Shown here piece by piece: positions 11,480 through 13,157 of a stretch of DNA of 64,000 nucleotides; the stretch's first letter is position 1, and each line of letters begins with the position of its first letter. The translations under genes and the position numbers were made by a program. The stretch spans positions 248,001 to 312,000 of IMG/VR virus record IMGVR_UViG_3300044712_001255; one strand, written 5' to 3'. The notes beneath the pieces were generated by a model. It saw only the letters and a program-made list of their open reading frames with translations, had not been told where the DNA came from and did not search any database.

Positions 11480-11554
11480 GACGCTGTAGCTCAAATGCAA
11501 GAGCAGCTGCAATTAAGCAGCAAGATGTTGGTTAAAATCCAGCTGGCGTCACCA
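11480..11554 (+). ncRNA. tRNA-shaped RNA with 6-nt non-canonical anticodon loop and encoded CCA
   Basis: Intact acceptor, D and T stems; GCTGC-AATTAA-GCAGC; ends ACCA. Confidence 0.65.
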
Positions 11555-11973: not shown

Positions 11974-12047
11974 GGTCCCATCTTCTAAATGGTCAGGATA
12001 CTAGACTTTCAATCTGGTAATGGCGAGTTCAAGTCTCCCTGGGATCA
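11974..12047 (+). tRNA. tRNA-Glu(TTC)
   Basis: CTAGA-CTTTCAA-TCTGG. Confidence 0.9.
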
Positions 12048-12221: not shown

Positions 12222-12293
12222 ATGCCACTGGTGTTAATGGTAACATGTGGGTTTCCAAGTCCCGTGATGCGCGTTCGATTCGTGCGTGGCATG
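12222..12293 (+). tRNA. tRNA-Trp(CCA) (Gly TCC register less consistent)
   Basis: TGGGT-TTCCAAG-TCCCG, G73. Confidence 0.65.
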
Positions 12294-12360
12294 CTAAACA
12301 AAAATGTGTGATACAAGCTCACACATTAGGAATACAACATACAAACGCAAGGAAAAAGTC

Positions 12361-12876
12361 ATGAATATCAGCCAAGCTCTTCGTCGTATCTCAGTCATTA
12401 AGGGTCAGCTCGCAACCACAGCAACACGTTTCGCCAGTTCAGTCACGTGGATTGATGACGCAAAGCCAACATATTCGCTTGCTGAGTGCGATGTTGCGTG
12501 GGCTCGTCTCGTAGGTGAGCAGACGTCGCTTGAGGCCGCAGTGGCAATTGCCAATGCAACGAACAAGATCACCTATCGTGGTCAGGAATTCACGCTTGCG
12601 TTTGCCGTGAAGCAGTTGGCTGTTTTCAAGGCAAAGATTGCGCTCTTGCGAACCCTGAATTGTCAGGCGACTGCAGAACGCACCGATGTTACTCGTGATA
12701 CTGAGTACGTAAATGGAAATTACGTAACTGTCACTCGAGAGAAGAAGGTTCACTGTGCATTCACTGAGCGTGAGCGTGATACGAGTGTTCAGGTAGCGCA
12801 GACAGACTTTGACGAGCTCAACGCACTCGTCGAGGCGGCAAATCACACCATTCAGGTCGACCCTCAGGTCGTCTGA
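12361..12876 (+). CDS. helical/coiled-coil protein, DIP1984-like
   Basis: MNISQALRRISVIKGQL...IANATN...ELNALVEAAN resembles DIP1984-family pattern (recalled, not searched). Confidence 0.55.
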   Translation: MNISQALRRISVIKGQLATTATRFASSVTWIDDAKPTYSLAECDVAWARLVGEQTSLEAAVAIANATNKITYRGQEFTLAFAVKQLAVFKAKIALLRTLNCQATAERTDVTRDTEYVNGNYVTVTREKKVHCAFTERERDTSVQVAQTDFDELNALVEAANHTIQVDPQVV

Positions 12877-12883
12877 TGTGAGA

Positions 12884-13081
12884 TGCGCCGAAAGGGAAGT
12901 TGCTGTTGAAACCCTGTTGATTTAAAATCAACTCAACCCTAATAAGGAATGAAAGCTATTGGTATCGGTTCTGGCATCGCATTCAGCACTCAGCGTCCAG
13001 CATCTTTTCCTATCAGCTCATAGCCCTTAGCAGGTAGATTTCAGCAATCAGCAGTCAATTACAACACGCTTCCCTTGCGTT
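12884..13081 (+). ncRNA. structured RNA with 7-nt-period YAGC repeats
   Basis: Closing AAGGGAAGT/GCTTCCCTT; YAGC at 12984,12991,12998,13014,13021,13028,13042,13049. Confidence 0.6.
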
Positions 13082-13085
13082 GTAT

Positions 13086-13157
13086 GCGGTGATAGTTTAG
13101 TGACAAAACGGCAGGCAACCAAAGCCTGAGATCATGGGTTTGATTCCCACATCCGCG
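13086..13157 (+). pseudogene. degenerate Trp-like tRNA (loop AACCAAA)
   Basis: CAGGC/GCCTG stem, no U33, mismatched acceptor. Confidence 0.45.

Follow-up and report, generated by a model that had tools for sequence, protein, structure and literature searches.

A DIP1984-like gene and a downstream RNA with phased AGC triplets form a conserved module in huge phages

That phased nucleotide triplets can be read by a protein oligomer is an already known principle. TRAP, a beta-sheet ring, uses 11 repeats with 2- to 3-nucleotide (nt) spacers; the Csr sponges, whose genes lie apart from csrA, present irregularly spaced GGA motifs in hairpin loops; and structured non-tRNA RNAs, species 1 and 2, occur in the tRNA cluster of phage T4, from which they are released by tRNA-processing enzymes. 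In Bacillus subtilis, the HutP hexamer reads XAG triplets with 4-nt spacers (a 7-nt period), three per face, and its two triplet blocks (3 + 3) are joined by a 12- to 17-nt linker (PMC2425495). Here, we describe a gene and an RNA in a 64,000-nt stretch of viral DNA (the window), which comprises bases 248,001 to 312,000 of a 324,468-bp IMG/VR virus genome with an estimated completeness of 86%. The window carries 45 tRNA genes, all on the plus strand (ARAGORN), which identifies the source phage as a huge phage. A 171-amino-acid (aa) open reading frame (ORF) is followed there by a ~185-nt segment bearing AGC triplets in 7-nt steps, and we regard it as practically certain that the two constitute a real, conserved gene-RNA module of huge phages.

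The module in the window is made up of the following elements.

12361..12876, plus strand: the 171-aa ORF, with AAGGA 8 nt ahead of its ATG
12892..12900, plus strand: 5' arm of the closing helix P1, AAGGGAAGT, pairing with 13068..13076
12904..12908 and 13062..13066, plus strand: arms of helix P1b, TGTTG and CAACA (5 bp), which extends P1
12916..12932, plus strand: hairpin GTTGAT/ATCAAC with a 5-nt loop, in the place of the GNRA-capped P3 of GC-rich relatives
12961..12984, plus strand: 6-nt-periodic tract (GGTATC, GGTTCT, GGCATC, GCATTC), counterpart of a tract of three to four GAYAYY units in relatives
12983..13005, plus strand: heptad block A, three units (AGC at 12985, 12992, and 12999)
13013..13056, plus strand: heptad block B, six units (AGC at 13015, 13022, and 13029, AGA at 13036, AGC at 13043 and 13050)
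13068..13076, plus strand: 3' arm of P1, GCTTCCCTT, pairing with 12892..12900

A preliminary description of this DNA had placed YAGC at 12984, 12991, 12998, 13014, 13021, 13028, 13042, and 13049 and TAGA at 13035, and all of these positions were exact. The strict 7-nt periodicity it also claimed was found within each block and not across the whole array, since blocks A and B (3 + 6 units) follow two registers with a 16-nt step between them and one unit reads AGA. No other 7-nt AGC chain with at least four of six slots filled was found on either strand of the 324,468-bp genome, and when the 400 nt downstream were dinucleotide-shuffled 200 times, no shuffle matched the observed chain. Tandem Repeats Finder reported no array, because just 3 to 4 of the 7 heptad positions are conserved.

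Homologous loci were collected from two close contigs, 17 metagenome loci, a phylum with ~1-Mb genomes, and contigs fetched by protein identity, and 25 distinct loci, each with 280 nt or more of DNA beyond the gene, entered the counts given here. Protein identity to the window ORF ranged from 30 to 78% across the homologous loci (mostly 30 to 47%), and base composition ranged from AT-rich to GC-rich; as L012 to L014, L015/L016, and the window with L002 are closely related, the 25 loci do not represent 25 independent events. Whether homologues carry a downstream periodic RNA was one of the points on which the preliminary description had staked its proposal, and a strong array (at least four of six AGC slots at a 7-nt period) was present in 21 of the 25 loci, a value that 0 of 200 shuffles reached. 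Two further loci, L011 and L018, have a weaker array with three of six slots filled and AGN variants in register. The arrays lie 115 to 320 nt past the stop codon on the gene strand, whereas no more than two of six AGC slots were ever filled in the 400-nt upstream flanks, and the complementary motif did not exceed two either. Beyond the counted set, L157 (identical in sequence to L023) and L158 likewise bear the array. In the reverse direction, a search of IMG/VR with the RNA pattern GCGGTYAGCNNTYAGA, 5 to 6 nt, AGCNNNNAGC matched three contigs, two of which have a DUF6847-like ORF directly upstream (expect value [E] 1e-57), the third match being a repeat within a 295-aa coding region. A generic (AGC-N4)x5-AGC pattern was discarded for lack of specificity, its more than 120 matching loci being CAAGC arrays or 7-nt microsatellites, with the protein in none of them.

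The relatives share a fixed plan, in which the 6-nt tract is followed by block A (three units), a phase break of 2 to 9 nt, and block B, often with a UUGU... tail. Block A of the window aligns with the conserved block of the relatives, whose family consensus is GCGGU-YAGC-NNU-YAGA, and block B has six units at most of the loci, a few having seven. A total of 108 units gave the consensus U(75%)-N-A-G-C-N-N, with U at position -2 of the unit in 75% of cases and depleted right after the C, and the AGC columns were aligned and conserved in alignments of both 18 and 7 sequences. For the 6-nt tract, the self-match at lag 6 averaged 0.365 over 22 loci in the 45 nt before the heptads, versus 0.24 to 0.29 at other lags. 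Pairing of this tract with the heptads was considered and dropped, the sequences not being complementary.

P1 of the window consists of eight Watson-Crick pairs and one U-G pair (9 bp) and closes the segment 12892-13076. The RNA of the closely related locus L002 is 89% identical; there, the U-G pair becomes C-G, and the hairpin at 12916..12932 retains its stem with an altered loop. Among the relatives, P1 measures 8 to 24 bp and differs in sequence between lineages; it begins 6 to 86 nt after the stop codon, spans 177 to 293 nt, and in 14 of the 25 loci reaches 14 to 24 bp with p < 0.02 versus shuffles. With G-U pairs counted, the gene strand gave a longer P1 than its complement did (for example, 22.5 versus 14, 15.5 versus 7, and 15 versus 8), which argues for an RNA transcribed together with the gene. 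A scan of the window for promoter or terminator consensus between gene and RNA found none, and no terminator-like site overlaps the array on the plus strand.

For the seven GC-rich members, RNAalifold returned P1, an inner helix P2 (GUCGGG/CCCGAY) bracketing the array, and a GCAA-capped hairpin P3. These helices were 83 to 88% canonical, compared with 21 to 68% in slid controls, and a script counting covariation on the GC-rich alignment gave five compensatory pairs in P1, three in P2, and six in P3 (six of its eight pairs). When MAFFT and RNAalifold were applied to all 18 RNAs or to 7 AT-rich ones, the arrays were aligned, the helix arms were not, and no pairs were predicted. Folded alone, the window segment was not significant on either strand (z = -1.5 on the plus strand and -1.1 on the other). 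Rfam 15 gave no match at E <= 1, either over the window segment or for the RNAs of 10 related loci. Several other identities were tried and rejected: a transfer-messenger RNA (tmRNA), since a tRNA-like end is missing and ARAGORN made no such call; a retron msr/msd, a nearby reverse transcriptase being absent; a coding repeat, as the 7-nt period runs out of frame; and mimicry of an anticodon loop or D-arm, neither of which the motif fits.

The window protein scored below the curated cut-offs of the two family profiles, with 15.8 bits for DUF6847 (Pfam PF20935; E 0.014, cut-off 27) and 14.9 bits for DIP1984_fam (NCBIfam NF038048; E 0.023, cut-off 70). With relatives clustered at 50% identity, an exhaustive phmmer search returned 262 clusters at E <= 1e-3, a number that fell to 159 at E <= 1e-10, and DUF6847 matched 58 of 77 phmmer relatives with a best E of 8.7e-15. 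An AlphaFold model built with the alignment of relatives reached a predicted local distance difference test score of 97.6 and shows a bundle of four long helices with two beta-hairpins, for which the term coiled coil used in the preliminary description is loose. The top Protein Data Bank match was 3kdq, a Corynebacterium diphtheriae protein of unknown function and the sole solved structure standing out (Z 14.3 with 149 of 152 residues aligned by VIA-align; template modeling [TM] scores 0.70/0.78 by Foldseek). Structure clusters labelled DIP1984, septicolysin, and Siphovirus Gp157 matched at TM 0.76 to 0.78 (Atlas); "septicolysin" on neighbours in AlphaFold DB and the ESM Atlas is an automatic label. 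Neither a HutP nor a TRAP fold appeared among the structure matches, of which 3kdq was the only strong one. Judged by homology through intermediates and by the modelled fold shared with 3kdq, the ORF represents a divergent phage subfamily of DUF6847/DIP1984.

This subfamily is ~20 residues longer than DIP1984/DUF6847 and has its own conserved motifs, M-x-I-S-Q-A-L-R-R-I-x-x-L-K-G at the N terminus (also MNISQALRRI..KG), L-N-x-x-V-E-x-x-N-H at the C terminus (also LNxxVExANH), and an A-N-A motif, with conserved polar residues R8, K14, N65, and N154/E158/N161/H162 in or near them. From the order of secondary-structure elements in the model, the conserved residues of the N- and C-terminal motifs should meet at one end of the bundle. 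A single copy of the ORF is present in the window genome. Searches of isolated phages and plasmids by blastn and tblastn matched no relatives, and a pattern scan of viral contigs with the single protein and then with a 3-sequence alignment found none. PADLOC gave no match for the window protein and one marginal, unrelated match for five relatives. In the literature, no function was found for any DUF6847/DIP1984 member; Acinetobacter plasmid papers take the septicolysin family as a putative cytolysin without experimental proof.

The preliminary description had placed the pair within a tRNA operon, and the ORF and RNA indeed stand between tRNA-Trp and a tRNA-like element that is followed by tRNA-Ala. 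The same-strand order is tRNA-Pro, tRNA-Trp, the ORF, 209 gene-free nt, the tRNA-like element, and two tRNA-Ala genes, with these flanking features.

12222..12294, plus strand: tRNA-Trp(CCA), called by ARAGORN, Rfam tRNA score 40.1 bits, upstream neighbour of the ORF
12303..12327, plus strand: 9-bp inverted repeat AATGTGTGA/TCACACATT, read from the sequence, between tRNA-Trp and the ribosome-binding site of the ORF
13086..13157, plus strand: tRNA-like element, Rfam tRNA score 21.6 bits, under the 29-bit gathering score, with no ARAGORN call

The order tRNA-Trp, ORF, and RNA is the same in L002, which also has a comparable inverted repeat in the same place. The terminator scan flagged the repeat of the window on the minus strand; it could be a processing or regulatory hairpin. 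The tRNA-like element has a good T-arm, a poorly paired acceptor stem, and the anticodon loop AACCAAA in the window, and it is kept in place in L002 (~1413-1486), where the anticodon loop has 8 nt. This element probably sets the 3' end of the RNA through tRNA-processing enzymes. Two more Rfam tRNAs that are absent from the ARAGORN list lie at 11480-11551 and 11974-12047 of the window (44.7 and 43.2 bits, above the gathering score).

Elsewhere, the long contigs bearing the gene measure 178 to 506 kb, each with a gene-free gap of 280 to 760 nt after the gene, and their content (many small ORFs without assigned identity, homing endonucleases, RNA ligase, NUDIX, and thymidylate-synthase-type genes) identifies them as huge phages. 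Six loci (the window, L002, L003/L004, L148, L149, and L150) place the module among tRNA genes or right after a tmRNA. The tmRNA of L003 (488-830, equal to 695-1037 of L004) has the tag GSNQYFAAAAA, and in this distant relative of the module 25 nt separate its end from the start of the DUF6847-like gene. In L150, where 10 tRNAs lie within 14.5 kb, ARAGORN called a tRNA at 1899-1973 with a four-base anticodon (tgtt) and an 8-nt loop. Some copies of the module are named as Patescibacteria or Magasanikbacteria metagenome-assembled genomes (MAGs); one MAG copy is surrounded by cellular-type genes and a serine recombinase next to tRNA-Asn, and is thus possibly an integrated element. In the phylum sampled, 4 of 401 genomes gave a match, one of them marginal (E 1e-4).

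A different class of array was encountered in IMG/VR phage contigs. It comprises 6 to 16 CAAGCNN units, often as two to three arrays ~800 nt apart, the last unit of which merges into a sigma-70-like promoter (AAGCTTGACA, N17, TATAAT) upstream of a GP88-family gene; these arrays lie near a small-terminase gene, and the DUF6847-like protein was found in 0 of 120 such loci. Example sites are the following.

L030, minus strand: CAAGC arrays at 1767-1859 and 2669
L041: CAAGC arrays at 531-568 and 1331-1390
L081: CAAGC arrays at 502 and 1297
L027: CAAGC array at 290
L029: CAAGC array at 855

By analogy with the known readers of phased triplets, the protein may bind the AGC array encoded behind its gene, a reading toward which the balance tilts slightly. 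Strict adjacency is what a direct partnership predicts, and it was observed in that the RNA begins 6 to 86 nt past the stop codon on the same strand in AT-rich and GC-rich genomes alike. A number of observations weigh against this reading. The arms AAGGGAAGT and GCTTCCCTT, with which the preliminary description had closed the segment, do pair, but P1 of the window, taken by itself, lacks significance, as 55% of shuffles gave an equally good helix, and it is credible only because homologous loci have a 14- to 24-bp helix at the same position. Single-sequence folding predicted an unpaired fraction of 0.42 in the array versus 0.33 elsewhere, which is no clear difference. Below 3kdq, the structure matches are generic helical hairpins, and no RNA-binding relative is known for the fold. 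L010 keeps the closing helix but has AGU, AGG, and AAG units, even though the conserved residues of its protein are intact, and L007 has no array although its protein retains all conserved residues. AGC or CAAGC heptad arrays are also present in phage contigs lacking the protein, and thus the motif by itself does not imply it. Finally, a canonical 153-aa DIP1984 gene on the Acinetobacter plasmid pMMA2 has no trinucleotide heptad array in the 450 nt downstream; therefore, RNA binding, if real, would be a trait of the subfamily. Of the dedicated gene-RNA pair proposed in the preliminary description, what stands is a conserved linkage (21 to 23 of 25 loci, and 2 of 3 matches in the reverse search), not a property of the whole DIP1984 family.

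In L007, a ~190-nt segment is bounded by a 19-nt direct repeat, GTGGGTGACGGCGCGCTGG (~2009-2030 and ~2200-2220), and may be a replacement or an insertion.

L007, the fold without a known RNA-binding relative, and the heptad arrays that occur without this protein also speak for an alternative in which a genuine, co-expressed transcript, either a stable small RNA or a 3'-UTR element, has a ligand other than the upstream protein. Its phased UNAGC sites would titrate or recruit, for instance, an RNA-binding protein of the host, a nuclease, or a translation factor, and the linkage would reflect only co-regulation or a shared pathway. The position of the module in tRNA/tmRNA arrays, where phages put RNAs acting on host machinery, fits this explanation as well. 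A host ligand, however, would need to be conserved across all the hosts concerned, and the adjacency described above is as expected for direct partners; moreover, both true matches of the RNA pattern (2 of 2) had the gene directly upstream. We therefore consider this alternative unlikely, albeit one to be taken seriously.

The preliminary description had also suggested a toxin-antitoxin-like pair, that is, a type III-like system in which a toxic protein of the "septicolysin" family would be neutralized by sequestration on the periodic RNA. One gene is indeed tightly paired with a repeat-bearing RNA, and the septicolysin labels on structural neighbours, together with the putative-cytolysin annotation on Acinetobacter plasmids, point in this direction. 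ToxIN-type systems, however, have ~34- to 36-nt tandem repeats ahead of the toxin gene, with a terminator between the two, and their toxin, an endoribonuclease, separates the repeats by cleavage. The units of the present array measure 7 nt, follow the gene with no terminator in between, and form part of a folded RNA; the protein does not have a ToxN-like fold, PADLOC gave no match, and the contexts are lytic-looking huge phages. Every type III feature that could be checked (repeat length, gene order, terminator, and toxin fold) thus disagrees with the suggestion, which is very unlikely to be correct. That the heptads act as DNA, as sites for a transcription, replication, or packaging protein, is hardly plausible: the more than 120 IMG/VR loci in which CAAGC-type heptads run into sigma-70-like promoters by GP88 or small-terminase genes indicate that phased AGC heptads can be DNA or promoter-proximal elements, but the 7-bp period mismatches the helical repeat of duplex DNA, covarying helices enclose the array and their G-U pairs fit the gene strand only, the orientation of the array relative to the gene is invariant, and the window shows no promoter consensus behind the array.

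If the protein does bind the array, the module could work as follows. The array would be displayed single-stranded within the loop closed by P1 and P2, and each AGC would be read by one protomer of an oligomer, with six protomers along block B and as many as three along block A; the 7-nt step is compatible, on geometric grounds, with helical bundles standing side by side. Since the RNA lies in cis on the transcript of the protein, newly made protein would load onto it and form a particle of fixed stoichiometry. In the window, tRNA-processing enzymes would cut the unit from the tRNA precursor at the flanking tRNA-Trp and the tRNA-like element, and in relatives with a P1 of 14 to 24 bp, RNase III could release the RNA. 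The recurring position in tRNA/tmRNA arrays points to a translation- or tRNA-related host takeover or to counter-defence, a role that we offer as speculation. Taken as a whole, the proposal of a new ribonucleoprotein of huge phages and Patescibacteria-type elements, with about six (plus three) DIP1984-fold protomers on a UNAGC array in the P1 loop, made in tRNA/tmRNA arrays and acting on host translation, tRNA metabolism, or tRNA-directed defence, is tentative, and we hold it to be possible rather than probable.

Were this proposal true, it would provide the first molecular function for the DUF6847/DIP1984/"septicolysin" fold, together with a new RNA family and a new mode of RNA recognition. 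A protein family with a solved structure (3kdq) becomes a candidate for RNA binding, with a defined ligand of ~185 to 290 nt that offers nine phased sites, and the explicit ruler formed by the 6-nt tract and the 3 + 6 heptads should ease tests of stoichiometry and recognition. The module also contributes a conserved, structured RNA that Rfam lacks, and it may bear on what phage tRNA/tmRNA arrays do besides codon supply. The pore-forming "septicolysin" label, which is experimentally unsupported in the literature, merits re-examination.

Compared with the described systems, the locus resembles phage T4 species 1 and 2 in that a structured non-tRNA RNA lies among phage tRNA genes, and we know of no periodic array or dedicated protein gene for those two RNAs. 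With DIP1984/DUF6847, 3kdq, and Siphovirus Gp157, the window protein shares the fold, but it falls below the curated cut-offs of the family, and the single canonical member checked (pMMA2) has no array downstream. The CsrB/RsmZ sponges are similar in that a short motif is repeated many times on a single RNA, which could hold several copies of a protein; the likeness to CsrB drawn in the preliminary description goes no further, because there are no GGA motifs in hairpin loops here. The repeated motif is instead UNAGC in a phased linear tract, which has exact spacing and is probably single-stranded, in an RNA fused to the protein's own transcript. The TRAP-type comparison made in the same description is apt, as in the trp leader (GAG/UAG x11) the RNA is wrapped with one triplet per ring protomer, a principle that could apply here as well; the present module differs in its 7-nt period, its 3 + 6 plan, its helical protein, and the lack of an attenuation system. 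HutP is, by analogy of the 7-nt period and the two blocks, a closer counterpart of the window array than TRAP. Like the hut RNA, the array has triplets with 4-nt spacers in two blocks, here in the form U-N-AGC, 3 + 6, with a phase break between them. It differs in having nine units instead of six and C as an invariant third base, and in its location 3' of the gene within a closed RNA, whereas that of HutP lies in a 5' terminator; the protein, a four-helix bundle with beta-hairpins, has an unrelated fold, and to our knowledge no ligand control is known for the HutP-like candidate described here. Thus, the reading of phased triplets by an oligomer has precedents, and judging from Rfam 15 and the literature that could be searched, the RNA family, its protein partner, the double ruler of 6 and 7 nt, the 3 + 6 plan, the placement 3' of the gene, and the setting in tRNA arrays of huge phages are new.

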